Assembly (NCBI GenBank): GCA_047495785.1
Contig: JBLDXI010000042.1
Span: forward strand, 620,001 to 684,000
Direction: 5' to 3'
Source: Lepidodermella squamata
Lineage: Eukaryota; Animalia; Gastrotricha
Length of the DNA: 64,000 nt
Part shown: piece after piece, positions 3,342 through 60,761 of the stretch
Position numbering within the stretch: position 1 is the stretch's first letter
How the letters are laid out: every line of letters starts with the position of its first letter
Position numbers and translations under genes: made by a program
The notes under the pieces: model-generated
What the model was told of the DNA's origin: nothing
Seen by the model: only the letters and a program-made list of their open reading frames with translations
The model's database searches: none

Positions 3342-6300
3342 TTATGGGCGTATATCAGAATGCAGCCTATCGGTCTGTTTTAGCGAAAAACCATCGATAT
3401 TGAGGCAAGCAATGCTTCCCATCAACGGCTCGACGGGAGTAGCCCAGGATCTATGAACAAAAAACGCATTCTCGTCAATAAACACTTCTGATTATTAGTA
3501 AAAGGTACAAACCCTGCTAAGTGGAATGAAGCGGATGTGGTAAACGGAGAGGCAGGCGGAAAATCCCCGGGTCCAGTTCTTAAATTACAAGTGATGTACA
3601 CTGTTCCTGCATCGGCGTCGTAACCTATCTTAAGATGGTGCCATGCGTTTTCAGCGGTTCCGTCACATTTAACTGATATATCAGCCGACCCATCGCCATA
3701 CGGCCTCAGCGTAAACGTTTGACCGACGTCGGCTGTAAGTCTGAAACCAGGCATCGATCCATCAGGAGCAAATTCGAGGATTGTGCCTTTCTGCGAAGCC
3801 GAAGCAGCGAACAAAAACATCGTGGAATTAGCGTTCAGCTTGAACTTCTCAGCAGTCGCAGTTATGGGATTGGTTGAGTTGTAGTAAAAAGCCGTGTTGG
3901 GTCGACCGAACTGCCCAGACACTTGTTTAAGAGCGGTATTTGTGAAATCAGCTCTAGGATCGATGCGGTCGTTCAGATCAGAAACTAAAGGCCAACTGGC
4001 AATTAACCCAGGCAGTCGAGAGTTTAACACGTCCATGGTCAAAATCTTTCCGAGCTGGATTTGAAGACACTTTTTGCGTAGAATCCATAATTGGTCCTCG
4101 GACATCAAGTGCTTGTGAAGCGAAAAACAAGCCAGCCTGCCTTTGAACGTGTCGGTTACGGCAAGTCCTCCGCCGAGTTTCATTTTTGAGCTGACTTGCG
4201 GTCTAAATCCGAGTAATGGTGCCGGGTCGACACGATTGTCTTGTAACATCAGTAAATTATCCGTATCAAAGTTGTAAGATATAGCGATGAAAGACCAATT
4301 CGGATCCACATTTGGCACAACCGTCATTTCTTGAGCGGTAAGCGGACCTATAAAGACAATCTCCGATGAATCATTTCGACAGGGTACGGAATATGGAGAA
4401 CTTCATATCAGAAACGTTTTCTCATTTTTTTCACGCAGTCAGGAAGAAAGGGGAGAGGGGAGTTGCTGTAAAAGTTCATATTCGAAGGGCGATATTTCCC
4501 TCTCAGTTGTCTTTCGGCCACTGCTAAATACGCTACATCAGCATCAAAAAATTGGTACGTGAGGGACGTGAATAAAAACATGAATATAGTTTCGGCACTT
4601 GCGAATAGTATGAAGTCTTCAATTCAATGGGGCTTAATCAAGGCTGGATTAAAATTCGGGTGGCCCCTGGGCACTTCCTGGTTGGTATATTTTTCCGCAA
4701 AACCGGTTGTCTAAAAGCCATGAGTCATTTTTCTGAAATTTAGGGCGCCTGAAGCAACGAAAATTCCATTTATTATTAAATTGTGTATTGACATTTCTTT
4801 AATTTCTCCTCAATTACAAAGCTCAACGACCGAGCCCAGAAAAAATATAGAATTGTCGCCAAAAATATAGGTCGAGTCGCTATGACAATTCGATATTTGT
4901 ATGGTATGACATGAGTAAAACGTTTATATCTGTACGGAGCCGCCCGAGATTTACGAGTCGTGACGAGCCGGAGGCGAGTTGCGATGAGTAAATCGAGTGC
5001 GGCGAGTTCCATATATGAACGATTTACGAATGTTATACCGTAAAATTTAGAATTGTCGTCAAAAATATAGGTCGAGTTGCTTTGACAATTGGATATTTTA
5101 CGGTATAACATTCGTAAATCGTTCATATATGGAACTCGCCGCACTCGATTTACTCATCGCAACTCGCCTCCGGCTCGTCACGACTCGTAAATCTCGGGCG
5201 GCTCCGTACAGATATAAACGTTTTACTCATGTCATACCATACAAATATAACACTGTGTCTATATTTTTAACCTTGAAACACAAATCTATATTTTTTCATA
5301 CTTCAAATATAGATTTGAGTATGAACTATATTTCTGATCTATATCTGAAATATAGATTCAGGTGTGTCTATATTTTTGACCTGGAAAATCTATATTTTGA
5401 ATATAGATGCCCATATCCAAGCCCAATACTTTCGAGTTCTTGGAACAGCCAATTCTAACGGAAAAACACAGGGATATAGTTTTCGCAACGCAATTTATTA
5501 TGAAAGAAAATGGAGAAATTCAATTTCGAGAATAATTTAGACGGGGAAAGCTTGGCAGGCGGGCAGCAAAAATTGGCCGTAGGAACTAGAATTTCTCAGA
5601 AAACTCCGGAAAATCGGGCAGCATTTCGTCCCCGCTGTGCATGAATTCGCAGCGATTCGTGGGTCGGATCGCGCAGAAGATCCTCGAACAGGTACGGTCA
5701 GCAAGTCACCTCCAAAAGCACCGGGAGCGCTGCGCAGAAGATCCAGAAAAATCCGACAGCATTTAGTCTTTAGTCCCCAACTCGCAGAAATCACCACCTG
5801 GGATTGCATCTTGCAGCACTTGGTCAGCGACAGTTCCGATTCGATTGCAGTGCAAAAATCGATGTCCCAAACACCGTTGCAACGCGCTTGTCCGAAACTG
5901 AGCCATTTTCAACGACCGGAGATGAAATCCAGACGGACTGTCATCGATTCTCGTGCATCGCATCCAGACGCGTGTCGTTCAAATCGAACCAGTTTCTTCA
6001 GGTTGTAAAGGCGCAAGGTTTTCGCGAACGAATTTCGAGGGAAGCAGGCTTCAGGGTTGATGGGTAATCGAGCCATTCGGCGTCGAATGCGGCAGGATTG
6101 TTCGAGACCAATTGTTGCCAATCGGAGCAGAATTCCGGGAGCATTTGTTCGCAAAATTCGAATATCATGATCGAAAATGGAAAGAAATGTTCAAACTTTA
6201 AGTCTTGACAAATAAAAACTGGCCCAGATTTGTAAGGTTTGGTCGGAGAGTTTGAGCCGAACTGAAGAAAGTAGACAAGTGCGAACGAAGCGAGCAATTT

Positions 6301-8919
6301 TTTTGAAAATTTTTTGGTCCAAAAGCTCTGTCCAAAGGCTGAAAAATTGATCGTTAAAGCCGGTTTCACAAATCATAAGGGTCCCCCCTTTGGAATTTTC
6401 CAACTAGATTCAGAAAATATGGGGGCCCTTGGGGCATAAGGGTCCCCCCTTTGGATTTTTCTCGAAGGGCCCGAAAATTGCGTTGTTTGCCTAATGAAAA
6501 ATCCGGCACTGAAACTGGGCGAAATTCAGCTCTTATCGGGTCGTTGATTTGTTGCGTAACAAAAATTTTTATAAGATCATCGCATCGGCTCGAGCAGTCC
6601 TTAATGCTGAATCGCCTCTTACTAGAAAATGTTGACGACTTACGCAACACGGCTAAATTCCGATCGGAAATGAGAGGTTGGAAGAATTTATTTGGAGAAT
6701 CAGTTGGCAGTTGGCAGTTGGGAGATCAAGATCAGGAACCAAAAAACAACAAACCCGAAATTTCGTTAGATCATGACTACTGCCGAAATTTAAAATTGTT
6801 AATAAATTAGTAAAAATTAGCCATGCAAAGTATTTTTCCTCCATTATTGGGACGCTTCATAATTGTTGCCAAAACAATCAACGAATTAGGTATGTAACAA
6901 AACTCCAGGAAATAACGAGGATAAAAGACTACAAGACTAAAAAAAGGTTTTTGTATCGTTTACATCGTCAAAAATACCGTAAATTCATCAGTAGCGTCCG
7001 TCTTGCAAGCGTCGTGATTTTCTTTGAACGACGTCGAGTTACCATAGATTTTAATCTGACGCAATGAAATACATTGTTGTGGATTCAAAACCTTATCGAG
7101 ACGATGGCCCAATTACCCGTGTGCCAGTCGTAAAAGCTCCATAGCACTGCTTGCCGTTGCTTGTTTCACACTTGGCGGCTCTCTGTGAAGGGTAAAAAAT
7201 CATTACATGCAATCTCAATTTTTACTTCGTCCCATTATTAGGTAGGTATAATGTAATTAATTTGTGGACAAATATGGCTGAATTATTACGAGAATAGCAT
7301 GAAAATGACATCGAGGAAGTCTTTACCCCTTTCAAGCAATTTTCCCTGTTGCTGAACGTAGCAGATGAAAATTCTCGGGTTTCAGTCCCAGCCTGGCAGC
7401 CAGTTGTCTCGAGACGGCAATCGATGAAGCTCCCGTTCGATGAGCTGAAGCACCTAACATGCGGTTTCTCGCTGTCTGGAACTTGAACTGTTACAATTCA
7501 ATATACAACATTCAACATTCGATGATTAAAAATCAAAATTGAAGAAAAACTCACGTGAAGTTCCCGAAATGCATTGACCAAGATTGCCAAATGGACTGCC
7601 ACTTGATTCGAGCTATCAGTATTTTGGTAACATGAGCATCGAAAATTCACACTTATAATTTCTAACCCAGTTCTCGGGGCAGGCGAAGTTGACTGGTACA
7701 CAAGTTTTCACCACTCCGTTGTCCGTGCATCGTTTAAAGGCTTGATTCTAATAAATACAATTTAAAAAGCAAAGGTAGCAAATAGCAAATAACGAAACAT
7801 TTACCGCGAATTTGGACCTCGCGCTGTTACAAGCGGCCAAGCTGTCTTTAAGTGTAATGTTTCTGTACCAAACAAGCTGGAATTGAATAAAGTGACAAAT
7901 TTAAATTAAAACCAACGCCGAGCAGTGGATTTACCTCGATTTCTCTGTCTGCAGCTTCCTCGTCACTCAATTGACACTTGCCCAGGCCGGGATTGCAACG
8001 TGGTGTTAGGGCGCCGTATTTGTAGCACATTTTAGCATTCTCATATTGTTACAAAATTGCAGCAAAAATGAGCGGCAAGTTAAATATTTCATACCCCCAA
8101 TCGGCAGGTTTGTAGATCTGGGAACAAGGGTCCCCACTAAGGAAAATAAATGGGAATTTATCAATGGAATTGGAGCGATTGGATAGGATCTTCAAGCAGA
8201 AAATAAAATTGAAGATTGAAGATTGAATTTTAAATTTTAAATCCTTCAATTCATTTTATTTTTTGTTGTGATTTAAGATAAAAACGTTCCTAAATCCTGA
8301 AAGCCATGAGATCGAAGTAAATGTTTTCATTAAATTCGGGTAAATACGGTAATATTGAAGATTCTATAATTTTTGAACACAATCGGCGTCCAATTTATTG
8401 AAGTTCCCTGTTTGACCTCATTTAAGACAACGTTAATACAATTTGGCTGAAAACGACAAAATCTGGCAAAAATAAAAGAAAACCCATTTCCTGCTCGGGA
8501 CAGGGCAGAGATTTTATTTGACTTTTGGCGAAATTCAAGTAAAATAAACAATTGCATAAAATAAACATGAATTAAAACAGGAATTTTGAGGAAAACTTAA
8601 ATATAAAATCATTCAATGAAGAACCTTCTTAAATCCTGAGAGCCTTGAAACTATTCAAAATTTATATCAAAACATAAATTACACCAAGAGGAATTTTGAG
8701 GTAAAATTTTCGATGTAGAGTAATTTATTCGATTTATTGAATAAAATGTTTAAAAAATACCTGGTATTCGGTGATAGGATCACAAGTTGGGTTGTTATCT
8801 CGGCATGAAGTGAATGCGTTGTTGGTCACTTGGAAGCATCGCTTGAAAACCTGGCCTGACCCCAAGACGATCAACGTGAACATAATCACGCAGATGATTT
8901 CAAAATTAAAGCTTCGCAT
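3342..8919 (-). pseudogene. Family copy 1 (secreted Cys-rich + LamG-like protein), internally deleted probable pseudogene
   Basis: Exons 1-9 (8919 to ~6978) and exon 13 (~4347-3512) are present with GT-AG sites. Exons 10-12 were not found between 4350 and 6970. The exon 9 donor is phase 0 and the exon 13 acceptor is phase 1. The last exon loses homology after ..MGSIACLNI. Confidence 0.75.
4893..5248. repeat. Perfect-looking inverted repeat: 154-bp arms with a 48-bp spacer
   Basis: 4893-5046 is the reverse complement of 5095-5248. The ORF track shows the same peptide (MELAALDLLIATRLRLV...) on both strands. Confidence 0.95.
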
Positions 8920-8991
8920 TGCTAGTTTATTCGAGAAAATAAAAACGAATAATGATAGGAGAGGCTGAATTCACTCGTTTAGGACTGGCCC

Positions 8992-10564: not shown

Positions 10565-13500
10565 TCAGAGCATTTCAGGAATCGCGTAGAAAGCGCAAAG
10601 AATTTCCGTAAGCCGTAGTTGATGAGGGGTATAATACGCTCCGCATATGCTCAGGCAAGCTAAACTTCCCATCAGCGGCTCGACTGGAGTAGCCCAAGAC
10701 CTGGTCAAACAATCAGTGATAAAATAGACGAACAAATATGACCATCAAACAAACCCAGCCAAGTGGAATGACCCGGCTGTTGTGAATGGGTCGGAGGATG
10801 TGGCAACCTCAGTTCCAGCTCGCGAATCACATTCGAAGGAGAGCGTTCCTTGCATATCGCCAGTGTTAGGATTAAAATAGCGGATTTTAAGATAATGCCA
10901 TTGAATTCCGCTCGATTCGGCGCAGTAAACTGTTAAATCAGCCGACCCATCGCCATACGGCCTGAGAATGAAGGTTCGATTGACGTCGGCCGTAAGTCTG
11001 AAACCCGTCGTCGACGCATCAGGGGCGAATTCCAGGATTGTGCCTTTCTGCTTGGCCGGAGCAGCAAAAATTGTTATCGTAATACCAGAATTTATCGATA
11101 AATCTTGAATAGATAAAGCTATAGGATCGGTTGAATTGAAATAAAAGGCCGTGTTAGGCAGGCCAAACGGTCCAGGTAATCTTTGCAAAGCTACGGTTGA
11201 GGTGGTAACATTAGCTTCAGGGTTTCTGTCATTCAGATCGGAAACCAGAGGCCAAGTGATAGGCGTGTTTAACTGATAGTAGAGCTCTGCCGGATTCATA
11301 ATCCACATCGCCCGAACCTGGAGGCATTTCTTCCGAAGTATCCACAACTGGGCGACGGTCATGGCGTGTTTGTGGAGCGAGAAGCATGCCAGTCCGCCTT
11401 TGAAGTTTATGTTCCCACCCAAATCGCCCCCGAGTTTTACTTTCGAGCTAACAAGTGGTCTCGAAATGAGTGATTCCTCGTGGATGAAGTTGTCATGAAT
11501 GACCAACAGCTTCTGCGTATCGTAGTTATAGGATATAGCAATGAAGGCCGAAGTCGCGTCAACACTGGACACTGCTCCCTCAAGAGAAATTGTGTAGTTC
11601 AGACCTATGACAACAAATTCATGCTTATTCCGATCACCGTGAACAGTGCGCGAAGTATACGAAGTATCGTACCCCCAGTTCACGAAGCAAAAGTTGAAAG
11701 TCCAAAAAAACAACAGGGGCACCCTTTTGTCATGAAATTGGGGCCCGAGTTCCGAACCCCCTAGTTCGAGGATCCTACTATACCTTAGAAGTTGAACATG
11801 GCTTGGCGCCCAGAACAAGGAGTGATTCGAATGAAAATTCAGTAACGCTAGTTTCAACTTACTTATCGTTATCCGAAGAAAGTCTGTTGCTCTGTTAATG
11901 TCGATGCTAGTAAGGTCCTTCTCGTTGTAGAACTCGAAAATTCTTTGCAAGCCGCTGGAATTCGCCGCAAATATCGGGTAAACGGCGATCGTGAACGATG
12001 AATTCTCGACATTTAGCAAGCTACTATCCAAGAGAACGGAGCCCTTCATTGAATCAATAGATAGCGCTCCGTTATTAAATAGTAGGTCTGAGTATTCCGA
12101 AGATGATCCAGTTACATTTCCGTTGATGCCATTTCCACTGATGTCATTCGTGTCTTCAATAAAAGGTAGGTATACAGTTTCAATCGGTAGCCCGAAAGGA
12201 GTCTCTGAAAGGCAAGATATAAATCGCGCCCTTGATTAGTCTTAGGCAAGCAACTCCAACTCACGCATATCGCACAGCTCAGCAGTTTTGAACATCGATG
12301 TCAAGTTCTGAAGTAAAAGAAAAACTCAGCTGAAAGAGTACTGATTGTCTCTACAAGTGAGAGAACTTACCCAGCTTTGAGGGCAGTCGTTAGCTACCGG
12401 AACACATTTCGATGCCATGATCAAATCATATGTGCAAAGCTTGTACTGGAAAACAGAAACAAGCCTTATAACTTGGAATGGAACTGATGAACAGATTGAT
12501 CATTTTTAATCTTCATGGGGACCTTTTCAAAACATTTTATCTATGGAGCACTGTACATATTTTACTATGATTGAAAATTGAAAGATGAAAACAAATACCG
12601 TGAATTCCGTGGCTCCCAACTTGCAAGCGTCGTGATTTACTTTGAACGACGTCGAGTTGCCGTAGACTTTTACCTAGTTTCATTAAATCGTTTTAGATGA
12701 CATCGAACATGATTTTTGGATTACACGCTTACTCGAGTCCCAATCGGGAAAGCTCCATAACACTGCTTGCCATTGTTTGTGGAACATTGAACGGCTCTCT
12801 ATTGGGAGAATAACATCATCAGAAGCTAAAATTAGATATATTGACATTTCATCTCACCCCTTTCAAACAGCTTTCCCTGTTGCTGAACGTGGCCGATGAA
12901 AATTCTCGAGTTTCAGCTCCGGCCTGGCAGCCGGTTGCCTCGAGGCGGCAATCGATGAAGCTCCCGTTAGACGAGCTGAAGCACCTAACATGGGGCTTCT
13001 CGCTGTCTGGAACTCGCACTGTTACCGTTTAAAACAGACAGCTTCATTTGATAGCCTAAATTGTGAAAACACACGAACATGTGGTTCCAGAGATGCAGAG
13101 GCTGAGATTAGTGAAATTGCTGCCACCCGCGAGCTGAAGCAGACAAAAATCATGAAAAATATTTCGAACGGTTCAAAATGTGCGTTAACCCAGTTCTCGG
13201 GACAGTTGATGTTGGCTGGGACACACGTCTTCACCACCCCATTCGCCGTGCATCTTTTAAAAGCCTGATTCTGAAATGCAAAATGGAGAAAATCAACTTT
13301 TGTTAAAGCTTTTATAGTCTTTTCACCTCAAATTTTGATTTCGCGTTATTGCACGCGGCCAAGCTGTCTTTCAACGTGTTGGCCCGGTACCAATTAAGCT
13401 GGATTAAAAAAGAGAAAACATCCGAATTCGGATACAATCGATTGGCAGGCCGGGAATTTACCTCGATTTCCCTGTCAGCTGCTGGCTCCCCAGTCAATTT

Positions 13501-14086
13501 ACAGTTGCCGAGGCCGGGATTGCATCGTGGGGTCAAGGCGCCGTATTTATAACACATTTTAGCATTCTGTTCCCGAGTGGAAAGAAAGGTACAATAGCGA
13601 GTGACATTGATTTCACGTAGCTCACCCCCGATCGGCACGAGGCAAAGTCAGCGAACAAAGGACCCCACTAAGGAAAAGGAACGAACTTGAAAACTCGAAT
13701 TGAATTTCACGAATAAATTCGAATCACAATTTAAAAAAAATGAGTTCAATTTAATAAAACCAATATGATGATTAATATTGAAATGAGGAATTTTCGGAAT
13801 GGTTGTAAATTTGAGCTCGAAATTTATTGAAAATCTTACATTTAATTTCCTGCGTAAAAAAACCGTGAATTTCGACAGGAATCAAACAACCCTTTCTTTT
13901 AAATATATTTAATAAAATTCCTAGAAATACCTGATACTCGGTGATAGGATCGCAGGTGGGGTTGTTATCCCGGCATGAAGTAAAAGCGTTGTTTGTCACC
14001 TGGAAGCATCGCTTGAAGTTCTGGCATGATGCCTGACCGTTTAAATTGAACGAAATCACGAGAAATAGTGAAATAAAGTTTCTCAT
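10565..14086 (-). CDS. Family copy 2: 14-exon secreted protein with six Cys-rich modules and two LamG/ConA-like domains, apparently intact
   Basis: Signal peptide MRNFISLFLVISFNLNGQASC. Exons match the paralogues with consistent phases. LamG-like motifs include YLPF..DISGNGING, FKGGLACFSL..AMT..QL and WPLVSDLND. The protein ends LCAFYAIPEML, with TGA at 10565-10567. Confidence 0.85.
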
Positions 14087-17040: not shown

Positions 17041-19917
17041 TTAAAATTTGTCGGCCAATACGAGTGCGCGTAGAGCCGTAACTTAGGCGGGCCTGAAAAT
17101 GTGCAACAAATACAGGTAAATTCAAGTGAGAGCAAAACAGGTCACAGAATAAATAAAAATGGCTTTTTCAGGAGAAAAAAGGAGTGCTATGTTCGTGTGA
17201 GAAATTTAGTTTTATTGAAAATTATATCGTTTCGGGATTAAATTTTAGATTTGAAGCTCGATACAGAAGTTGAATTGCTGCGTTGCGAAATTATTTATTT
17301 GATGATCCTGTGTAACACATGTTAGCTCATCCGTTCGACATTCACACACGCTTATCACCAACTTCGTACTTCAATCACTTCCACTCACTTTCAATAGATT
17401 ATGAAAATCGTGCAGGTCATTTTCCCGAATGTTCTTCGCGCGAAATAACTGATATGATCATTTTTGAAGCATTTCAGGAATTGTGTAGAAAGCGCAAAGA
17501 AGTTTCCTAAAGGCGAATTTGATAGAGGCTATTGATCCTACCGCATAAGTTGAGGCAAGCTATGCTTCCCATCAACGGCTCGACTGGAGTCGTCCAGGAC
17601 CTGTTGAAACAACAGACGATACAAAAAGGTACTAATATGGTCATCCTATAAACCCTGCCAAGTTGAATGATCCGGCTGTTGTGAATGGATCTAGGGGTGT
17701 AACAGCCTCGGCTGCGGCTCTTGAATCACATTCGAAGGAGATCGTTTTTGGACTATTGTCATTGTTAGAAGTTAAATAACGAATTTTAAGATAATGCCAT
17801 TTGATTCCGCTCGATTCGGCGCAGTGAACTGTTAAATCAGCCGACCCATTTCCATAAGGCCTGAAAATGAAAGTTCGATTAACGTCGGCCGTAAGTCTGA
17901 AACCCGTAGTCGACGCCTCGGGGGCAAATTCCAGTATTGTGCCTTTCTGCTTTGCCGGAGCGGCATAAATTGTCATCGTGAAACCATAGTTTAATAAGAG
18001 ATACGGCATTGAGTAAGTGATCGGATCTGTTATATCAAAATAGAAAGCCGTGTTAGGCAGGCCGAACGGTCCAGTCACACGTTGCAAAGAGGCAATTGAG
18101 GTTGTTACATTAAATTCAGACTGACTGCTGTCGTTCAAATCGGAAACCAAAGGTAAAGTGACAGGCGTGTTTAATTGGTAGTAGAGCAATTCCGGATCGA
18201 TAACCCACTTTGCCCGAACCTGGAGGCATTTCTTCCGAAGTATCCACAACTGGGCGACGGTCATGGCGTGTTTGTGGAGCGAGAAGCATGCCAATCCGCC
18301 TTTGAAGTTTATGTTCCCACCCAAATCGCCCCCGAGCTTTACTCGCGAGCTAACAAGTGGTCTCGAAATGAGCGATTCCTCGTGGATGAAGTTATCATGA
18401 ATGACCAACAGCTTCTGCGTATCGTAGTTGTAAGACATAGCAATGAAGGCCGAAGTCGGGTCAACACTGGACACTGCTCCATCTAGGGAAATGGTGTAGT
18501 TCTGACCTATGACAACAAATTGATGCTTTTTACTACACCTGGGAAGTTAACAATTAAAATATTGCCAGGGGGTAACGCCCAACCGATCCTGTCTCTAATG
18601 GTTCGCAAATTTTCACAATTTAGAGTTCATAAATGGGCTGACTTCTCAGAACCATGCACATTTTGCAAATTTTTGTAAGGGAGAGTGACTCGCTCAAATA
18701 ATTGAATCCAGACAATTTTAATTTAAAACCGTAATTTACAGGCTGGACTAAAATAAACAGCAGGGTCATTTGAAATAATCAAGGGCAGAGCTCCGAATGA
18801 CGTAGCTTGCATGACCACCTACTGGGCAAGTTGTTAAAGCCGGATGGGATGCGATTTATATCAGCAAGTACACTAATCGTCTTTCATCCACCTTAATCCA
18901 CTTGAGCAAAACCTTCACGTTGTAGCCACAGGTGGAAGGTAGTAGCTATAGCGGTTTTTCGCCGGTTAATCGAGGTACTCTTCTGACTAACGACTAACTG
19001 ATTAAGTTCCAAAAAATATAGGGCGAAATCCGTTTGAAAAAATACAGGGCAGTCTATGATTATTTGTAAATCACAATAATTATTTTTTCCACGAAGAAAG
19101 ATAAAATATAAACCCAATAGCTTACTTATGGTTACTCGGAGAAAGTCTGTAGCTTTGTTAATGTCGATGCTAGTAAGGTCCTTCTCGTTGTAGAACTCGA
19201 AAATTCTTTGCATGCCGCTGGAATTCGCCGGAAATAATGGGTAAACGGCGATCGTGAACGATGAATTCTCGACATTTAGCAAGCTACTATCCAAGTGAAC
19301 GGAGGCTTCGGCTGTATCAATAGAGAGCGCTGCGTTGTTAAATAGTGGCTCCGAGTAATCCAAAAATGATCGAGATAGATTCCCGTTCATGCCATTTCCA
19401 CTGATGTCCATCGTATCATTTATGAAAGGCAGGTAAACTGTTTCCATTGGCAGACCGAATGGAGTCTCTGGATGTAAAATTGAAATAATGCCGCTTATTA
19501 GAGAAAGAGTAGGTCGAACTCACGCTTGATTGACTCTAGAAGTTGAGAGAACTTACCCAGCTTTCAGGGCAGTCGTTAGCTACCGGAACGCATTTCGCTG
19601 CCATGATCAAATCATATGTGCACAGCTTGTACTGGAAAACAGAAACAAGCCTTATACCTAGCAATGAAATTTATCGATCGATTTCATTAATTTAGAGATC
19701 TGTGAAGGCAGAGCTTTAGATTTGGTTTGATTTGATTTGATTTACAGGTTAAATCAAAAATGATTTAAGCCTTAAGCGTATGGGCATTATATTTCACCGA
19801 AATAATGGCCTAACCATGATGGTCACTATGGATCCAAATGCGCCAACCAATCATTTCTAATCTAAATCAGAGAAAATAGAGTATTAATCAAATCAAATCA
19901 AATTCAATGGAGAGGTA

Positions 19918-20803
19918 CCGTAATCCGGTACAACTTTGTACACCTACCTCCATGCAAAATTCAATGTGCTGTGTAAATTCAAAAGATGCGATTTTGGTCG
20001 GGTTTTCAACGTAGTTCGATACGTAGCCCGCTGTAACATCCTGATATTATTTATTCTCGGAAATGCGCAAACGCAAGAATTTGGCAAGGGGCACCCCAAA
20101 AATACAACTTTGAACACCAAGACTTCGTGAAATAAAAAATCCACCTTTATTCGTGCGCAGAGAATTTCGCGTGAAATTTGCGATTTTCACCACACTGGTT
20201 TGCTTCATAGAGAACGTATTGCGTGAAAATTGAAAAATAATAAGTTGTCAACATTTTATTATGGACTTTTTACTCGGTATTTGAAATTTATTCGTTGCCA
20301 TTACGAGATAAGAAGTTTTTTTCTGATCACTACGTTCTCTATGGTGCATAGTAGAGTTCAATAAATGCGAACGAAGTCAATAAAAAACTTGAAACCTTCT
20401 CCTTCAAGCTAAAATAATGAATTTCTATCGTGTACCGGTTATACCGGCAACCCTAGCAACTTTGAGCGCATGCCACGCGAAAACCATACTCTATAGAAGA
20501 GCGTGCCTTTTTAGCTACTTTTTCAGAAAAGTACAAGCTTGAATTCGCCAAGTTGGAACGCACGGATGTCTGCTACGGTTATCGCAGGACAACACTTCAA
20601 AGTAGACTAAAACGTTGTTTTTCGAGAATTTGTAAGAAAGAGACTGTAGGGGCTGTGTTGATGAAACATGGCAAAATGTTAGATCTCAACGAGACCTATA
20701 TTCAGTAAAATTCCCAAGCGGTAGATCCCCATGGTTTCAGAGAAAACCTGATTTGCGTGAAATGTTCAAACTTGTACCTGTTCAAACTTGTACCGGATTA
20801 CGG
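19918..20803. mobile_element. MITE with TA target duplication (Tc1/mariner/pogo-type)
   Basis: TA|CCGTAATCCGGTACAA ... TTGTACCGGATTACGG|TA. A lone matching end also occurs at ~61876-61892. Confidence 0.85.
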
Positions 20804-21214
20804 TAAGTCTTCTTATTTCTATTTAATGACTAATGACAAATTTGAGTGCTTTACGATGCTGTTCATCGTGAAGGTAAATTTATTGATTATTCAGCCCTTA
20901 TAATCTTGAATTCGTTTTAGCAATTGCTTCAACAGAAAAGCTCGTTGAAAGAAGTGAACTTAATTTCAACTTAACCTAGCTTAATTTGAATTGATTTGAA
21001 TTAATTTGAAATCTGAACTTAACTAGCTGGCTAATCCCGGTAAAATGCGCCTCAAATCAGTTTTAGGTAAGTTAATTCAGGAATAATTAATTATCACAAA
21101 TGCTTAGAATTTTGCTCCCGTTGAAAATATTGACGTGGCAATATTAGCATATCATTTTAATAGTGCAATAATTCCATAAATCTCGAATTTATTCGAGCAC
21201 TCATTCTGCTTTAA

Positions 21215-24200
21215 CCCTCTAAGTCCGGCTGGTGTATGTGTAAGTCGCTTGGTGTTTTGGAAAGTTGCAAAAAAATGACAAAAATGTGTGTTACTATTGT
21301 AACTTTTAAAAGTGCTTGTGTTAACACAAGTCTTAAAATATTTTCACCAATTTTTTTCATTTTGACCAAAAACGTCGTTTTTACATGTCGAAACACAAGC
21401 GAAACGATGTAAAAAATGTTTATTTGTGGGAACACACCTATGTGGTTTAGCACGTAATTTTTTATTTATTTGGCAATTTTCGAAAACACATGTATGCGAA
21501 TCGCACGCAAATTTTTTAGGTTTTGGATGAAAAGTTCAGTCATTTTGGACCGGTAATTTTGTCAGATCCCGGCATGAGGACCATATTTCCCGAAATTTTC
21601 ACAGCAAAGACCGACGTCGCATTGAGCGCAGTGCCAGGACGCCATGTGCGGTGTGCAGCCAGGCGCCACCTTGCAGTAGACGCACACGCGCGGCTTTGCG
21701 CGTTTGTAACCGCGAGCGTCGACCGACTCATAGAAGCCATTGTGAGCAGGAAAATGGCCGCCTTCTCGCCATTTGCCGCTCGGGACCAGCGGGTCGAGCT
21801 GTTCAGAAAGCTTGCGTTTTCTGCCGACCTTGCGCGTAACATTGCCGGAGGTAGAGGCTTGTATCAACTCGTCGAATAGCCGACGACGGAATAGCAAGCT
21901 AGGATAGTCGGGATCATCTTCCGTGGACTTGAAAGCCAACAGGGCGTTGTTGATTGCTGTTTCGATGCCATAGAAAATCACGAGGCGGTGCCACTTGCGC
22001 CCGGGCAAAGTGCAATCGTACGACTCGCGGAGGCGATCGGCGACATCTACGCCGCGCATGTTCTTCTGATAGTCAGCGACAACGGGGGGACAAGAGTACT
22101 CAGCGACCTTGCCGTTTTTCTGCTTGCGCTTTACCGTGTCGTTACCAGTGCCGCAATGTCGAGTTGAGAGAAAGTTGACGACTTTCGAGTCTTGCCACGA
22201 CTGATAAAGCAAGTCAGCTTGAACTTTGAACTGCGAACTTCCACGCGGTAGCTTTGACGCGGGTTTGATCGGAACGGCCGGATCCAGACCTGTTCGATTG
22301 GCGATAACGGTGCCGGCTGCGTAAGTTTTCTCAGCAAAAAGGCGGTTGTAGAGCGAAACTGAAGAAAACCAATTGTCCATAAAGATAATGCGCCAGCAGC
22401 CCCAGATTGAAGTTGAGAGCTTGAAAACGATCCGCTCAGCGAGACCTGCTTGAGCAGCAACGTCCGAGCCAGCTATTTGAAAATTGAGGGTAGACAAGAG
22501 AACAAAACAAAAAAATCACGTACTTTCATCTCCTTTCCCGCTGTACAGCAGTGCTCGAAAGATATAACCGATAGGTGATAGCGCCAGGGCGAAAATCTTT
22601 AGACCTCGCTTGACGGGTTTCATTGGCATAAATTGTTTGAGGCTGGTGCGCCCTTTGAAGGCGATCATTTGCTCGTCCACAGCAATCTGTCAAGAATAGG
22701 ACAATAAAGATGAGCAAAAAGACAAAAAGACAACAATTTACATCGGGTCCTATCGTGAAATTAGCTTGCCAGCTGTCCTGCAGCTGTTGTAGCATTTCTC
22801 GGACCTTGAAAATCTTGTCGAATTTCGGGTCTGTTCGAGGCAAGGCTTTGGAGTTGTCGGCAGCGTGTAGGTGAGTCAGAATTTCTCTGAACCGATCTCG
22901 ACTCATGATGTTCGCAATCGTCGGCTGAAAGAACAAAGCATCCGAAGATTGCCAGTACTGATGAAGCGCCGGCAAGTTGACAAGACCCATCCCAATGACG
23001 CACGCCAGAAACCCGAAGAACTCCTCCTCGGTGACGTTGATGAATTGCGGCTTCGATGGATCGTAGTTCTGTGCCGCGTACCTATTCGTTTCAGCGACCA
23101 GCAAGCTGACGATCGGGAACATGAGGAGGAAGAAAGGAAGCACTTTCCGATGACTTCTTCTCTTGACCAACTTGTATCGGCTCTCTGATTCGCTTGAGTC
23201 GCCGTCAGAATAAACTGATGATTGCTGTTCGTCTTCTTCCGCTTCATCATCGGCTTCTTCGTCAAGATCTTGGAATTCTTCTTCGGCCTCCTCATGCGCT
23301 TCTTGGACTTCTTCGACGACGTTTCCTGCCTCGCTCGGTTCTTCAACAGCTTGCTCCTCGGTACCATTCTCTTCGCCCCCGTCCGGGCCGGCATTGCCAT
23401 CAGAGCGCGATTTCCCGCCAAGTTTTTTGCGGTTTTTTTCCATGGCTACAAAAAAATTGTGAGCGGTACAACAAATTTGATAAATATTAATTACCTTGCT
23501 CCATTGCGACGAGGTTCTTGATGAAAAGTTCCGATGGACCGCTGACCAACGCGCATTTTTCAACTTGGTGAGACGGTCTCTCCTCGTTCATTTTCCGCCA
23601 TTTCGTCTTCGGCACGACGGAGTCGAGCGTGACGCCAAGCTCTTCATCGTTAGACGACAATTCCGACGAGGTTTCGCCGATCTCCACCAGGTCCTCTTCA
23701 CTGCTACTGTCGTCTTCAAGTGACATTTGATAACGAAGTTAACAATTTTGGGGAACCATAAAATAGATTATTGCAGGTCTTTTATATGGCTGTCTTCTCA
23801 TGTTTCGCAATGCCATGCGAACCCATTGTTTTGCAACAAACACCTTGAAAAGTCCTGTTACATCATACTTGTGTTTCGACTTGTAACAAAACTCTGAAAA
23901 TTTTGATGCAAGTTGACAAAACCTCGATTTTTCGGCCAGGATTAGTTGATAAATCAATGGCACCTTGACAAACCGGCTAGCATTACCGGCGCGCACCCTA
24001 ACTACGCGCTTTTAGCCGATGAAAATCGATATCGAATCGGCGGCAATCAAATTTATCGGAATTGGTACGCCAAAATCACTTGATAACTTTTTGTCAAGTG
24101 AAAAATGGCTGCCACTAGAGTGCGTAAGCACCAGATGTTGCTGACAACATTTTTATAAGCACAGCTGCGCAACTCAATTTAGGGCCTTGAAAACAGTGAT

Positions 24201-24526
24201 TAAAAGATCGTATGTGTTTTCGCATGTAAATTGGTTTCCAAAACACGTTCGTGTGTTCGAATGGCAATCAGAGCGACAAAAAATTGCCCCTCATCATGTG
24301 TGCACACATAATGGCACATGTGTTTCGACGAGTTTAAGAGTCGAGGGACATTTACCTAATTACTGTGTTGCGTAATCGCACGTTGCGGACGCGCCCGCCT
24401 GGGTGCTGCAAGCTCAGGTAAGGGGCTCAACCGTGGTATAAAAATTTTATGCCGAAAATTAATAAGCAATCCACACCTACGCCGAGAAGTTGCAATTGAC
24501 GAAAACCCATAGTCGGACTTAGAGGG
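21215..24526 (-). mobile_element. Full-length piggyBac transposon inside intron 9 of copy 3
   Basis: TTAA|CCCTCTAAGTCCGGCT ... AGTCGGACTTAGAGGG|TTAA (16-bp TIR with 1 mismatch, TTAA TSD) encloses a transposase gene. Confidence 0.95.
21562..23726 (-). CDS. piggyBac transposase, 4 exons, ~669 aa, apparently intact
   Basis: Exons 23726-23495, 23445-22742, 22686-22524 and 22472-21562 join in frame through GT-AG introns. Catalytic motifs are VDEQM, MDNWF and GVDVAD. The C-terminal Cys-rich domain reads CVYC..WHCAQCDVGLC. Confidence 0.9.
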
Positions 24527-26949
24527 TTAAATTTTGACATGATAATAACTACCAGCCCGATTAAAAAAAAATTTTCGGTATTGATAATCATGAGAACAGC
24601 CACCATAATTACCATAAATTACCATAATTGCTCCAAAGGGCCAAAGGCATGATCCGAAGCATGATCCAAATTACCCTAGTAGACCAACGATCCTTTTTCC
24701 ATTCATTACCGGCAACAGCTGCTTTTAAGAAAATAGTTGAGGGTTCTTGAAAAAGTGATCTCGGGCTTGGTTAGATATGGCTAACCACTGAAAACAACGT
24801 CTCCTTAGTAACTAAGAAAAAACGTAGCTACACACTTATGATTCATCGCTAGCTCTTTAACAAGATAAGTGCCCGACCCACAGCCCCGATCCCGTGCACT
24901 AATCTAATAGGGAGCACTGTACATTTTTACTATGATTGAAAATTGAAAGATGAAAACAAATACCGTGAATTCCGTGGCTTCCAACTTGCAAGCGTCGTGA
25001 TTTACTTTGAACGACGTCGAGTTGCCGTAGACTCTAACCTAGTTTCATTAAATCATTCTAGATAAAGTCTAACATGATGTTTGGATTACTAGCTTACCCG
25101 AGTCCCATTCGGAAAAGCTCCATAACAATGCTTGCTATTGTTTGTGGAACATTGAACGGCTCTCTATTGGGAGAATAACATCATCAGAAGCTAAAATTAG
25201 ATATACTAGAAAAGACGGGCGCGCGTAACGCGCGCCTCGTATGTCACTAATTGGCGTATACTTGTTATTTCCAAATTAAGCAGATTAAAGCGGAAGAAGG
25301 GTGTTGAAAAACTTTTTTTATTTACAAAAAACTTCACGGTACACAATGTTCCGAGTAATCGGCAATTCAGTCGCTGGCCACTTCTTCACATAGCAGTAGA
25401 GATTTCGCGGGTCGGTGACGCGAGATAAGGCAAAGTACAACTGTCCGTGGGAGAAAACCTCACTGCGATGCAGAGAAAGACCAACGAACTGAAAAGTTTG
25501 TCCCTGACTTTTGTTAATTGAGCAGCAGAAAGCTAACCGCACCGGAAACTGGCGGCGGCGAATAGCGATCGGCACTCCCTCTTGGTCTGAGATCAAAGGA
25601 ATTCTCGGAATTTGAGCCAAATTGCCAGCGCAGGCCCCAGTCAATATGCGAGCTTCCAAGACGTTCTGTCGCATGCGGGTAATAGTCAGCCGCGTGCCAT
25701 TACAAAGGCCGGATGAGGGGTCCAGGTTGCGCAGCAACATGATGGGCGCGCCGATCTTTAAAGTCAGCCGATGAGGAGGAAGACTGGGCGGGGTGAAACT
25801 GTTGAGAACTTCTGTGGGATAGAAAGGCTTGAGATTCGGGTTCTCGACGGAATCGCAACTCAGGAAGACCTGTTCTTGTTCGGGGACGGAGCGCAATATC
25901 TGGAAAAAAAAACAATATTGGTAATGGCAACAACAGACCGCCGACAAATTCCTATCTCAGCGTTAAGGGCATCCACCTCGTCGTTACGTGCGACAAGGAT
26001 ACATCGTTCCGACAAATATTGAGGTCCGCGATAGCCGCTTTTTACGTCACCATAAACGGAGTTTATCAGGTCGGAAAGCCTTTCGACACAATTAATCGGT
26101 TCCGGGAGGGAAATCGTTTCAAGATGAAGTGGATCGGGTCCTTTAGCGACACCGTCCCCAACCGACAATAGCCAAGGTGCGAAAGAGGAAACCGCAGGGT
26201 CGGTAACGACGCGCATGTTTTGACTCAGAGTGAGCTGTTTCACGCGATGCCAGAAAACCGATCGGGTTAAACACTGCTCAACGATTTTATGACGACCGCC
26301 TTTAGGTACGGAGATTAAGGGAAAAGCCGACAATGCGCCAGAATGCTTCAGACGTGGAGACGTAACGCGCATCGCGAAACTGCTTGATTTCATCCACGGG
26401 TTTGCTTGGGTCGTAAACAGCCACCAGGGCGCGGTCGTGGCCTTTGTACACGTATTTATACAAATTCTTCACAGCCCGGATGCCACTACACACCTCCACG
26501 TTAATGTGGCAGTCGTACTTCAGTAGAAGGAAAGAGTTATACGGAACGACCCATCGATTGTCGACTAATGCACCATGACTTTCGGCAACATTGCCGTCGT
26601 CTCGACATTTGTAAGATGGATAACCGTCCTTGCTGCAAGTTGTTTCTTCCGCAAACGGCTTGGGGAAATTTTTTGTACATTTCCCATTGTCGAGACACCG
26701 GGCGTCACAGGGTCCATGAATCATACAGCGTGTGACGATAGCATGGAGACGCGGATGTGTAGTTTTGTTCGGAATCTCTGCGGATATGACTTTGTCGAAT
26801 TCTTCGGGCGACAACGGGTTATCTTCTTTCGCCATTATCAGCAAGAGGTGACAGTGTGGCAAACCGCGTTTCTGAGAAATCCGAATATAAATTCAAGTTA
26901 TAAAGATAACAAAATACAAAACATACCTGGAATTCAATAATAGTATATA

Positions 26950-35300: not shown

Positions 35301-35990
35301 AATAATAAAAATTACCGCGAATTTTGATCTCGCGCTATTGCAAGCCGTCAAGCTGTCTTTCAAAGTGTTCTTCCTGTACCAATTAAGCTTAAATACAGAA
35401 AAATAAAATAAAAATAAAAATAAAACGGAACAAAGGCGAAAGCTGAACATTTACTTCTATTTCTCTGTCAGCAGCCGGTTCGCCACTCAATTTACAGTTA
35501 CCAAGTCCAGGATTACACCTTGTTGTTAGTGCGCCGTATTTGTAGCACATTTTAGCATTCTATTTAAGATTCGAATAAAATCAACAGGAGCGGCAGTTCG
35601 GAATTTTACGTATCTTACCCCTGATCGGCACGATGCCAAATCTGCGAACAAGGGACCCCACTACATAGAAAAATTAGAAGAAATTATAATAAATAATATA
35701 AATGATATTTCTTCAACCAGGAAATCTATTGATAGCGAATGACTGACTATTGAGACTATATTCACCAAGTTCGAATAACTTTAATTTCTGGAATAATTTT
35801 GGGATAATTTTTATGAGAAAATGATTAAAAATACCTGGTACTCGGTAACTGGATCACAGGTAGGGTTGTTATCACGGCACGCAGTAAAGGCGTCGTTGGT
35901 CACCTGAAAGCATCGCTTGAAGACTTGACCTGACGCCCGGCCGATAAACGCGGACGAAATGCATGAAAATATTAAAATAGAGCTTATCAT
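32394..35990 (-). CDS. Family copy 4: 14-exon secreted Cys-rich + tandem LamG/ConA-like protein, ~750 aa, apparently intact
   Basis: Signal peptide MISSILIFSCISSAFIGRASG. All exons were traced with matching phases (e.g. WGPLFADLASCRSG, IASSGTPYENLSLCIAGTS, QHKLCTFARLMAAKCVPVANSCPQNW). The protein ends CASYTIPELL, with TAA at 32394-32396. Confidence 0.88.
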
Positions 35991-43560: not shown

Positions 43561-43683
43561 TGAATTTTAATAAATTTTTAATATATCGAGCTTTATTTAA
43601 CCAAGCCAATTTTTTTTAAATTTTCTTATTTTCCACATCTCACCAGCTCTCAACACAGCTGATCCCAAATTATTGATTCATTA

Positions 43684-56626: not shown

Positions 56627-59600
56627 TCACAGCAATTCAGGAATCGCGAAAGCAGCACAATAAATTTCCAGAATTCGCTGGATTTCGAAGGCGACAAAAG
56701 CAGTCGAGAAAACATTGAGGCAAGCAATGCTTCCCATCAACGGCTCGACTGGAGTAGCCCAAGATCTGTGAACAAGTATTAAATCGGTAAATCAACATTA
56801 TTTGTGAAAGATACATACCCTCCCAAGTGGAACGAGCTGGATCGGGTGAATGGTGAAGGGGGCGTAAGTTCCTCGGTACCACCTTTCGCTGTACACATAA
56901 AATACACTGTTCCTCCATCAGCGTCATAACCAATATGAAGATGATGCCATGCGGCCCGGGCAGAGCCGGAGCAGCCACATGATTTATCACCACCCGACCC
57001 ATCACCATACGGCCTGAGCGTAAATGCTTGATTGACATCGGCGGTAAGTCGGAGACCAGGGTTCGACCCATCGGGAGCGAATTCCAGGATGGTGCCTTTC
57101 ATCGTAGCCGAAGCTGCGAACAAACTCATTGCAAAGTTGACATTCAAATTTATCTTTCCGGCAGTTGCAGCGATAGGATCGGTTGAGTTGTAGTAAAAGG
57201 CCGAGTTAGGCCGGCCAAATGGCCCAGTCACTTGTTGAAGGGCGGTATTCGAGGTCGAAAAATCAGCTCTAGGCTCGACGCGGTCATTCAGATCGGAAAC
57301 CAGCGGCCAACTGGCAATTAACCCTGGCAATCTCGATTTCAACACGTCCATAGTCACAATCTGTCCGAGCTGAATTTGAAGGCACTTTTTGCGAAGGATC
57401 CACAATTGGTCGAGGGTCATGGCGTGTCTGTGAAGCGAAAAGCAAGCCAGTCTGCCATTGAAAGCAACTGTTCCCAGCAAATCACCGCCGAGTTTTATTT
57501 TCGAGCTAACCCCCGCTAAGAAAGTGGTTTTACGCCCCTGCTCGAAGTTATCATGTACTGTCAGGATCGTCTTCGGAGTTGTATCGGCGTTGTAACTTAC
57601 AGCGGCGAATGCCCAATTCGGATCCACAGTAGGCACAATAGAACCCTCATAAGTGAATCCCAAACTCGGACCTGTAAGAGATGAAGATCTAATTAGTAAA
57701 CAATTTCGTCCAAGGTTAAAGGTGAAAGGCTACAATGACTGAGAAAAGCTTAGGACGGTGCTCTTCGTTTAGATCCAAATCTTAATACGAACCTAATCTA
57801 CATACTAATGGGATACTAGTTTTCAGCTGGTGAGGAAAAATGCGTTTTTGGCACGTAAAATCACCAATTTAAGCATCCGCCAATGACGGGGCCAACAACA
57901 ATAGAACTTCACCCGGGCGAGCCATTTACCCTCGCCTTTATGCTAGTGTTATTGAGACTATAGAAAAGATTATAGCACAAGCAAACATAGCTGATGTAAA
58001 ACTTACTCAGTTCCATAAAAAGTGAATCTGTTGCTCTGTTAAGGCTAAGCCCAAGAAGATCTCTTGTGTCGTAGAACCCGAAAATTCGTTGCATTCCGGT
58101 GGAACCCAACGGTAAAAACACGTATGCAGCAAGCGTGAAAGAAGCATTCTCGAAGTTGAGTAAGCTGTTTTCCAAGAACACGGAACCTTCGGTGGAATCG
58201 ATAACTAGCGCTGAGCTGCTGTAGGGACCGCTGTCGAAGGTCAAAGATGCGCCAGAGTAATTGCCATGGATGCCGTTTCCACTGATGTCACTCGTACCAA
58301 ATTCCTGGCTGAGAGGCAGATAAACAGTCTCCAGCGGTAGCCCGAAAGGAGTCTCTGTGCCGAAAATTCAAATTATCATCTAAGAAGCCAAGGGAAGCTA
58401 GCTCACGCTTATCACACAGCTCTGCACTTTTGAACGTCGATGTTGAAGTCTGAACATTAAAATAGCCGTGGTGAAACATTATGTCTCTATTTTTATAGCT
58501 CACCCAGTTTTGGGGACAATCGCTTGCTACTGGAACGCATTTCGCCGCCATAAGAAGGGGAAACGTGCAAAGCTTGTGCTAGAAAATCGAATAGAATGAA
58601 TCGAATATCGAATAATGATCGGACATCTAAAAGCAGTAAAAATTGGACAATACGATGAAATACCGTATCTGCCGTGGTATCCACTTTGCAGGCGTCGTGA
58701 TTCTCCTTGAATGACGATAAGCTCCCATAGACTTTAACCTAAACTCGTGAAATAGCTGTGGACTTGGGCAAGCAGAAGTCGAAATGATTGGCTCACTTGT
58801 GTGCCATTCGGAAAAACTCCATAGCACTGGTTTCCACTGGCTGTGACACATTGGACGGCTCTCTATCGAAACAGAAAAAATGGAGTTCAATCGCCTTGAT
58901 TATATTATCAAATTAAAGTGACTTTCTTCTGTTCACGTGTTTTTTTAAGAATAGGTCGTGCGTGCTAAGCTGTGGGAATCTCCCCAGCTTGCCCAGACCG
59001 GAGATGGAAGTAGCCAAATTTAAAATCGATTTTAAGTGGTGTTGGAACATGTTTCAGTCAAAATTCAGAAAATTTTCGAAAAATAGCAAAAAATAATAAT
59101 ATCCATGGCTTCAATTTTCATCAATTTTTCATTTTATTAGCAGAAATTTTGAACTGAAATATGTTATAGAAAAAATATCAGTCATTACCCCTTTCAGGCA
59201 GTTTTCCCTGTTGCTAAACGTAGCCGTCGAAAATTGTCGAGTTTCCGCCCCAGCCCGGCAGCCAGATGTCTCTAGGCGGCAATCAATGAAGCTCCCGTTG
59301 GACGAGCTGAAGCACCTAACATGCGGTTTCTCGCTGTCTGGAACTTGTACTGCTACAGTTCAAAATAAATGAATTAATAAGCTAACTTTTAGTATTAATA
59401 ACTCTCACGCGCAGTTCCAGAGATACACAGGCCAAGATTAGAATAATTGCCCCCTGCGACCTTCAAGAAACAAACAAAGTATTTAAAACTATATTTACTC
59501 CTATGACCGGAATAAGTTTTCTAACCCAGTTTTCAGGACAGGCGTAGTTGGAGAGTACACATGTTTTCAACACTCCGTTGTCCGTGCACCGCTTGAAAGC

Positions 59601-60761
59601 TTGAGTCTAAAATCACCGTTTTACACAAAAAGCAGGAAAAATAGGCGTAAAAGAAATTACCGCGAACTTAGATCTCGCGCTGTTACAAGCAGCCAAACTG
59701 TCTTTCAAAGTGTTATTTCGGTACCAGTCAAGCTGATCAAATCAATAAAAAAGATTGGCATTCAATCGAACGTGGATGGGTAAATTTACTTCGATTTCTC
59801 TGTCAGCAGCTGGTTCGCCAGTTAATTTGCAGTTGCCGAGGCCAGGATTGCATCGTGGTGTTAGGGCGCCGTATTTGTAGCACATTTTAGCATTCTGATG
59901 TCGATGCAAAATTGCATCAGGAATACACCAGCCATTCAAAAATCTCATACCCCTAATCGGCAACTTTGTAGATCTGGGAACAAGGGTCCCCACTAAGAAA
60001 AATTAATGGAAAGTCAAACATGCAATTGCAAGACATTAACTGGAAAACTTTGAGAGAAATTCGGTAACAAATTCGAAATTGAAGCTCATATGTTAGAGCA
60101 CCGAGTTTCGATTCTAATCGAAACAACTCGTAATTTTATATGAATCACAGCCAAAGTTTACGGGAGGGAGCGCTTTCTAGATCGGAATCAAAACGAGTGA
60201 TCTAACATTTTTAGAGCACGGCTCTAATTTTCAGGGACGGAGTTACTCGATTTTTTCTCGATTTTAATATAATTTTGTGCTGCAAGTGACCATCACCTAG
60301 TATCTATCCGATCTGCGAACCAGCAAGGAACTGCCTATGTCACCAACATGGCATGAATTTCCCTCAGATTCTTTGTATATTGACCCAAAAAATTGGCCTT
60401 TTTGAGTGCAAAGAGAAGAAACTATATCCAATCAGACTGGCTAAAATTAGCTTATTAGTGATCAGCATTGTCTCTGCCTCTGACCCGACATTTATTTAGG
60501 GCCTGACATCTATTTTTTCGGACTACCTCTAACCTCTGAAATTTATTTGAGGTTGCCATTTTCGTGCTGTAATAATTCTTCGATTTATTGAAATAAATTA
60601 TTGAATAATACCTGATACTCGGTAATAGGATCACAGGTAGGGCTGTTATCGCGGCAAGAAGTGAAATCGTTGTTTGTCACCTTGAAGCATCGCTTGAAGA
60701 CCTGGCCTGATGCCTGGCTGGTTAGTAACGCGAACGAAATTAGCGAAATAAAGCTGCTCAT
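56627..60761 (-). CDS. Family copy 5: 14-exon secreted Cys-rich + tandem LamG/ConA-like protein, apparently intact
   Basis: Signal peptide MSSFISLISFALLTSQASG. All exons were traced with matching phases. The protein ends CAAFAIPELL, with TGA at 56627-56629. Exons 2 and 13 are closest to copy 1. Confidence 0.88.

Follow-up and report, generated by a model that had tools for sequence, protein, structure and literature searches.

In a stretch of 64,000 nucleotides from the gastrotrich Lepidodermella squamata (contig JBLDXI010000042.1, positions 620,001 to 684,000; the whole of it is called the window below), five related gene units lie one after another on the minus strand between positions 3342 and 60761. 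This array is probably a tandem cluster formed by one animal gene family that is lineage-restricted, the members of which are secreted, N-glycosylated proteins of ~750 amino acids without a membrane anchor. The family is real, and its architecture is a new one that makes use of a known binding domain: a chain of six cysteine modules is followed by two domains of the LamG_3 class, which is known and widespread. By analogy with other domains of the LamG and pentraxin type, the LamG_3 pair, which differs between the paralogues, would be the ligand-binding end of the protein, the ligand being glycan or protein. The strongly conserved chain of disulfide-bonded modules would be the common stalk, scaffold or docking part, and the odd number of cysteines would permit a covalent dimer or the attachment to a partner.

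Gene models of the array

The DNA of the window is of animal type, with ~42% GC, spliced genes and several types of transposon. All five related units are located on the minus strand, and the repeat families common to them are spaced 7.2, 6.9, 14.9 and 24.2 kb apart. Every unit contains the same order of short conserved coding blocks in tblastx and tblastn, and in the DNA alignment of units 2, 4 and 5 the conserved blocks are flanked by AG and GT dinucleotides that are likewise conserved, and the sequence from one block to the next cannot be aligned. Thus, the five co-oriented paralogues named in the original prediction are confirmed by repeat families, by translated searches and by DNA alignment with its GT/AG sites. 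The limits of the array given there are also exact, as position 3342 is the last base of the stop codon of copy 1 and position 60761 belongs to the ATG of copy 5.

The exon limits were taken from the conserved block boundaries (AG/GT) in the alignment of units 2, 4 and 5. Spliced at these boundaries, as had been proposed, copies 2, 4 and 5 give stop-free coding sequences of 14 exons with intact frames of 752, 754 and 753 amino acids. Their introns are all GT-AG, and the three copies agree in phase throughout, with a phase-0 start for exons 1–6 and 8–11, a phase-1 start for exons 7, 12 and 13 and a phase-2 start for exon 14. The introns of the intact copies are mostly 50–67 nt long. The donor of intron 13 is AGG|GTWTGT, and this placement restores the frame that gives the conserved strand P-L-M-G-S-[ILV]-[AT]-C-L of exon 14. 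The earlier count of three intact and two broken copies is correct, with copies 2, 4 and 5 spliced free of stops and copies 1 and 3 damaged; the 14-exon structure said to be shared by all five stands for copies 2, 4 and 5 and is only partial in copies 1 and 3. It had also been noted that the N-terminal half is hidden from the track of open reading frames (ORFs), and the exons there are indeed only 42–161 nt long. The spliced models of the intact copies are as follows.

10565..14086, minus strand: copy 2, intact, 752 amino acids, 14 exons
Copy 2, exons 1–7, minus strand: 13931-14086, 13626-13667, 13462-13566, 13327-13398, 13190-13270, 13079-13133, 12858-13018
Copy 2, exons 8–14, minus strand: 12733-12798, 12599-12673, 12371-12445, 12265-12307, 11863-12204, 10755-11604, 10565-10700
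32394..35990, minus strand: copy 4, intact, 754 amino acids, 14 exons
Copy 4, exons 1–7, minus strand: 35835-35990, 35619-35660, 35455-35559, 35316-35387, 35178-35258, 35058-35115, 34847-35007
Copy 4, exons 8–14, minus strand: 34277-34342, 34144-34218, 34009-34086, 33911-33953, 33510-33857, 32584-33427, 32394-32529
56627..60761, minus strand: copy 5, intact, 753 amino acids, 14 exons
Copy 5, exons 1–7, minus strand: 60612-60761, 59951-59992, 59790-59894, 59661-59732, 59526-59606, 59409-59460, 59189-59349
Copy 5, exons 8–14, minus strand: 58797-58862, 58664-58738, 58504-58578, 58407-58449, 58007-58354, 56819-57671, 56627-56765

Pairwise comparison of the intact copies gave a synonymous divergence (dS) of 0.8–1.0 and a ratio of nonsynonymous to synonymous divergence (dN/dS) of 0.22–0.28. 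Because the ratio is so low at this dS, the similarity among the copies shows constrained coding genes and not chance, and the intact copies are old duplicates under purifying selection. The sole sequencing run found, X1, contains 97% of the words from introns and exons alike, its depth is flat at ~60 and it has no joints. This marks it as a DNA run, from which splice junctions cannot be confirmed. It is very improbable that the array as a whole is dead in transcription or in decay, with the intact copies only recently silenced. Such a state would agree with the finding of a DNA run only, with two broken copies in five and with the dense transposons around the array, but three copies keep frames of 2.26 kb across 13 introns, and a dN/dS of 0.22–0.28 despite a dS near 1 requires long-term selection on the protein.

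Intron 12 differs among the intact copies. In copy 2 (11605-11862, 258 nt) it is stop-free and in frame, exon 12, the intron and exon 13 forming one ORF of 434 amino acids (482 codons from the start of exon 12); its retention would add 86 residues to the first LamG domain with the frame kept. In copies 4 and 5 the same intron (82 and 335 nt) is out of frame.

Architecture of the predicted proteins

Each intact protein has a hydrophobic N-terminus followed by A-S-G-Q | V-F-K-R-C, which, judged by eye, is consistent with a signal peptide. No window of 19 residues exceeds a Kyte-Doolittle value of 1.63, and the proteins contain 8–12 N-x-S/T sequons and 30–31 Cys, with D+E of ~64 and K+R of ~60 per 750 residues. 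The absence of a transmembrane segment and the many sequons are thus as first described, and these features suggest that the proteins are secreted and N-glycosylated and have no membrane anchor. Moreover, the proposed order of signal peptide, six Cys modules and two LamG domains is supported, and these parts fully account for the 750-residue protein. In copy 4, for example, they are arranged in the following way.

33911..35990, minus strand: exons 1–11, signal peptide and six Cys modules
Modules and exons: A1 = exons 1+2, B1 = exons 3+4, C1 = exons 5+6, A2 = exon 7, B2 = exons 8+9, C2 = exons 10+11
~33140..33857, minus strand: first LamG_3-like domain, exon 12 with the 5' third of exon 13, interrupted by intron 12
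~32394..33068, minus strand: second LamG_3-like domain, the remainder of exon 13 and exon 14

The modules are 40–59 residues long, and their core consists of [F/H]-K-[R/L]-C, 7–10 residues, C, 6 residues and C, with a fourth C 16–28 residues on. The 23 conserved N-terminal Cys are divided over A1, B1, C1, A2, B2 and C2 as 4-4-4-4-3-4, that is to say, the six modules of the original prediction are right, with module B2 (exons 8–9; e.g., 34144-34342 in copy 4) one Cys short, namely the third of the pattern. The LamG domains add 6 conserved Cys, for a total of 29, which is odd because B2 has three; one Cys, probably in B2, may accordingly be present as a free thiol or form an intermolecular bond. 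Against shuffled sequences, the similarity of the modules reaches z = 8.2 for A1/A2, 9.0 for C1/C2 and 5.2 for A1/C1, and 1.1 for the barely similar B1/B2; in the alignment of the type A and type C modules, three Cys columns are invariant. A phase-0 intron splits five of the modules, and A2 is a single exon. A phase-1 intron follows the last exon of each A-B-C triplet (exons 6 and 11), the second triplet being a symmetric 1-1 exon block, which fits exon-block duplication or exon shuffling. In summary, the set of six modules goes back to an A-B-C triplet that was duplicated, and micro-exons encode it.

It might be supposed that these proteins are structural parts of extracellular matrix, mucus, shell or tube, in which the modules cross-link and the LamG domains bind a polysaccharide scaffold. 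The predicted character of the proteins (secreted, glycosylated, Cys-rich and with one odd Cys) is in favour of this, and two papers on mollusc shell matrix mention Laminin_G_3 once each (PMC4660305, PMC11291548). However, the low-complexity, repetitive or strongly charged regions typical of matrix proteins are absent, and Pfam found no chitin-binding or VWA domain on the exons scanned, so a structural role is considered unlikely.

No known family was recognised in the modules. Pfam gave no family at E<=10 for exons 1, 3, 5, 7 and 10 taken singly, the module profile (32 columns) reached a best E of 2.1 against the PDB sequences, and exon 7 obtained a best score of 0.83 in the ESM Atlas, which is a low recognition. 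For exon 7, AlphaFold2 (AF2) was confident in one of five models, with a predicted local distance difference test (pLDDT) of 85 and a hairpin, a third strand and a C-terminal helix. Fold searches with this model gave E>1 in Foldseek against the PDB and Swiss-Prot AFDB and a best Z of 4.6 in the VIA wide search. The MbtH-like matches among them (TM score ~0.6, Z 4.6, E>1) were discounted as a chance likeness in a small beta-beta-alpha arrangement. Known small disulfide domains (EGF, Sushi, ShKT, PAN, TSP1, CBM14, Kazal, Kunitz and others) showed no profile or fold match, and the modules are split across exons.

The C-terminal half, judged from sequence and from a predicted model, is placed in the Laminin_G_3/ConA-like superfamily (PF13385, clan CL0004), not with pentraxin or classical laminin G. 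The features of exon 13 match Laminin_G_3 clusters of the ESM Atlas with a score of 0.98. A profile built from the five exon-13 peptides found 41 matches at E<=1e-3 among 1.84 billion representative proteins (best 1.8e-11, none <1e-30), and all 17 matches that were scanned carry PF13385 (E 1e-9 to 1e-98); among them are double-LamG_3 proteins of Ptychodera, Nematostella and Lingula, as well as a protein of Lineus with a single LamG_3 domain. The array sequences align in register with the animal double-LamG_3 cassettes, so that D-I-S-G-N-G at the start of domain 1, W-P-L at the start of domain 2 and the F-x-G-x-[LIV]-[AS]-C ends coincide. It had been proposed that the D-x-SGNG-x-NG start and the F-x-G-x-LAC...QL end are marks of Laminin_G_3 or pentraxin-like jelly-roll domains, and both align with the same motifs of confirmed Laminin_G_3 proteins. 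As for the neighbouring classes, Pfam gave no match to Laminin_G_1 or Laminin_G_2 (PF00054, PF02210) at E<=1, that is, the resemblance to these is structural only; none of the three intact proteins contains the pentraxin signature H-x-C-x-[ST]-W-x-[ST], and there is no PF00354 match. Beta-trefoil matches of exon 13 among the PDB sequences (designed Symfoil proteins, E 0.02–1.5) were rejected as noise.

The structural check proposed earlier, AlphaFold followed by Foldseek, was applied to the exon 12–13 region of copy 2, the modelled chain being exon 12, the retained stop-free intron 12 and exon 13. It consists of two all-beta sandwiches with a core pLDDT of 70–88 (intron part <30). In the PDB, Foldseek matched it best to laminin alpha2 LG4-5 and neurexin LNS pairs, and also to the lectin-like domain of the clostridial neurotoxin binding region (E 6e-10 to 1e-7); in the AFDB clusters it returned LamG-like jelly-roll tandems (E 1e-12), and in the Atlas, Laminin_G_3 clusters.

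Duplication, damage and selection

Copy 1 has lost the middle of the gene, and copy 3 is a fragment. The parts that can still be placed are listed below.

3342..8919, minus strand: copy 1, broken; exons 1–9 and 13–14 present, exons 10–12 missing
Copy 1, exons 1–9, minus strand: 8761-8919, 8095-8136, 7935-8039, 7805-7876, 7667-7747, 7555-7612, 7327-7487, 7117-7182, 6978-7055
Copy 1, exon 13, minus strand: 3513-4347, open
Copy 1, exon 14, minus strand: 3342-3450, diverged tail
17449..25178, minus strand: copy 3, fragment with only exons 8, 9, 10, 12, 13 and 14
Copy 3, exons 8, 9 and 10, minus strand: ~25098-25163, ~24964-25038, ~19557-19631
Copy 3, exons 12 and 13, minus strand: 19126-19467, 17655-18506, open; exon 14 starts at 17600
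21562-23563, minus strand: remnant of a piggyBac-type transposase, two ORFs, DDE_Tnp_1_7 (E 1.6e-25 and 7.8e-22)
25318-29922, minus strand: Helitron-type ORFs, Pif1_2B_dom (E 3e-21) and Helitron_like_N (E 9e-6, under the Pfam cut-off)

In copy 1, exons 1–9 form an open frame of 274 amino acids with good splice sites, and 2.6 kb of unrelated DNA stands in for exons 10–12. Skipping from exon 9, with its phase-0 end, to exon 13, which requires phase 1, would shift the frame. In copy 3, exon 14 has a premature TAG, exon 11 is gone through a 74-nt deletion, and exons 9 and 10 are 5.3 kb apart. The enlarged intron 9 between them contains the decayed piggyBac-type element, whose two ORFs are the N- and C-terminal halves of DDE_Tnp_1_7. 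No trace of exons 1–7 was found from the upstream side of the fragment to copy 4. The Helitron-type ORFs end ~150 nt upstream of exon 8 in the same orientation, at the place where exons 1–7 would be expected, and this junction can be explained by a Helitron that inserted with a deletion, or else by partial duplication or capture.

The youngest pair is copies 2 and 3, with a dS of 0.33–0.37. Compared with the intact copies, the open exons of the broken copies have a dN/dS of ~0.3, and so the damage probably came late in comparison with the duplications. Duplications, deletions and transposon damage keep the array in turnover, and evolution by birth and death, as first suggested, fits duplicates of different age (dS from 0.33 to ~1.0–1.5) of which two are broken by deletions or transposons. 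Within the intact copies, dN/dS is 0.11–0.16 in the Cys region and 0.26–0.46 in the LamG domains, and the lowest windows of 30 codons (0.00–0.07) lie over module B1 and its flanks. Variable patches include residues 340–369 of copy 4 just past the SGNG motif, the inter-domain linker and residues 656–680.

Several side observations belong to these copies and their surroundings. Exon 13 of copies 2 and 3 (10757-11602 and 17657-18504) shows 80% protein identity at a dS of ~0.35, and some blocks of the two copies are 93–95% identical, including intron sequence round exons 8–9 (12560-12840 and 24925-25205); this uneven identity could come from gene conversion. The replacement DNA of copy 1 holds an inverted repeat at 4893-5248 (165 nt, 98% complementary, 26 nt between the arms), which looks like a foldback element or a miniature inverted-repeat transposable element. 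The 20-kb gap between copies 4 and 5 contains, at 38411-40392 and 43681-47303, a weak match to MULE transposase, a poly-Q ORF and a Gypsy-type retroelement with RNase H and an integrase zinc domain and a local GC of 0.50. Another element may be marked by a direct repeat of 138 nt at 48466 and 55502 (86% identity, distance 7036 nt). A homology search with the piggyBac ORF found nothing at the strict threshold of E<=1e-20, and the homologues of the Gypsy RNase H ORF have only 29–48% identity, with Argonauta hians (35%) the one named.

The reading of the array as a cluster of secreted LamG_3 proteins also has points against it. The sole run that was found is DNA and gives the gene models no splice joints. 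The Pfam scores for Laminin_G_3 are below the gathering cut-off (exon-13 peptides 21.5, 20.5 and 17.7 against 27.6 bits, E 3e-4), although sub-threshold scores are expected because introns cut both domains. The AF2 model of the domain pair is of moderate quality (pLDDT 60, predicted TM score 0.53) and holds a retained-intron insert of 87 residues, and the N-terminal Cys half of 290 amino acids was searched by single exon or short profile, not as a whole. The binding ascribed to LamG and the role ascribed to the odd Cys come from the domain class. In addition, no window of 30 codons has a dN/dS >1 in more than one pair of copies. The divergent loops claimed at first are weakly founded, as predicted loops and strands have pairwise identities of 0.57 and 0.63, which is not significant (p ~0.1). 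Without significantly variable loops and without a consistent dN/dS >1, nothing points specifically to a diversifying recognition system. The immune lectin, adhesive or mucus component and gamete-recognition protein of the original prediction are candidate roles.

Relatives and known systems

Among the 1.84 billion representatives there is no close relative, as judged from the exon-13 part only (best E 1.8e-11, generic LamG_3). Since the animal proteomes of NCBI are covered, an orthologue in a sampled species would probably show through exon 13. The 434-residue read-through ORF of copy 2 had no match at E<=1e-3 in a word-indexed search (5584 candidates), and a metagenome scan with the exon-13 profile gave four loci with 30–40% identity over 42–89 residues, generic LamG_3 at best. 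A literature search for four conserved peptides of the family and for LamG-fused ligand-gated channels found nothing relevant. In agreement with the original prediction, no named family with such an architecture was found in the searches run, at the level of exon 13 and of single exons or profiles.

It could be objected that the family belongs to a characterised one, which was missed because the Cys half was searched exon by exon: its 290 residues were covered by single exons in Pfam, by exon 7 in the Atlas and fold searches, and by the 32-column profile against the PDB sequences. This is quite improbable, as an orthologous family should score far better than the best E of 1.8e-11 in the exhaustive exon-13 search, and the four conserved peptide motifs do not occur in the literature searched.

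Another proposal is that the family is a soluble counterpart of putative Cys-loop channels with two N-terminal LamG-like domains, the secreted proteins acting as decoys or ligand-presenting partners, much as the acetylcholine-binding protein (AChBP) might be compared with nicotinic receptors. The proteins of the array do carry the double-LamG cassette, but the window contains no channel gene or Cys-loop domain, and Pfam gave no match to the ligand-binding domain of Cys-loop channels or to an AChBP-like domain on any exon scanned. The exon-13 profile search gave no channel-length close relative, and double-LamG_3 cassettes are present in many unrelated animal proteins, so the proposal has a low probability. 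It would be equally doubtful to unite the secreted proteins and the putative LamG-fused channels in one system, in which the soluble family competes for or delivers the same ligands and the chain of 4-Cys modules is a new class of docking domain. If the channel link were true, the array would be a tractable entry to an unexplored kind of extracellular sensing. As it stands, the family counts among the many lineage-specific, uncharacterised secreted families of invertebrate genomes.

Taken as a cluster of secreted LamG_3 proteins, the array would, if the models are right, add a new domain architecture and probably a new disulfide module of ~45 residues, which is A-B-C duplicated, absent from Pfam and much more constrained than the LamG domains carried with it. 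The array also illustrates gene birth and death in compact form, with duplicates that are dated and two copies that are broken in different ways.

Among known systems, there are tandemly expanded lectin-like families in marine invertebrates, such as the C1q-domain proteins of bivalves, which are reported to be secreted and arranged in tandem arrays (PMC6835236). They differ from the array in the binding domain (C1q versus LamG_3), and the array has no sign of positive selection; pseudogenes and the divergence of paralogues are shown for the array only. Pentraxins (PTX3, neuronal pentraxin and Limulus SAP-like) belong to the same clan and have the same fold, and a combined profile of the array cassette and animal LamG_3, which is dominated by the latter, reaches PTX3 (E 1e-4) and a SAP-like pentraxin (E 9e-4); however, their signature is absent from the array proteins. 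The LG4-5 pair of laminin alpha and the LNS pairs of neurexin (5ik7, 1dyk, 3asi, 6cw1) are tandem LamG-type beta sandwiches too and give the best Foldseek matches to the AF2 model (E 6e-10 to 3e-8, probability 1.0). Their TM scores are only 0.22–0.29, the relative orientation of the domains being either not common to both or not modelled, and the rest of the protein is unlike. In the animal tandem LamG_3 proteins compared with the array, the partner domains, where present, are PAN or D8C, and none has the six 4-Cys modules. Examples are three uncharacterised proteins, XP_070535747 of Ptychodera flava, XP_032240504 of Nematostella vectensis and XP_013404145 of Lingula anatina. Although they are only 16–23% identical to the array proteins (E 1e-6 to 1e-5), they likewise have two consecutive LamG_3 jelly rolls, with the common start motif (W)PL...D-[IV]-[ST]-G-x-G and the common end motif F-x-G-[RG]-[ILV]-[AS]-C-[FL]-x-[LI]...AL/AM...[QE]-[IL], followed by the closing Cys.

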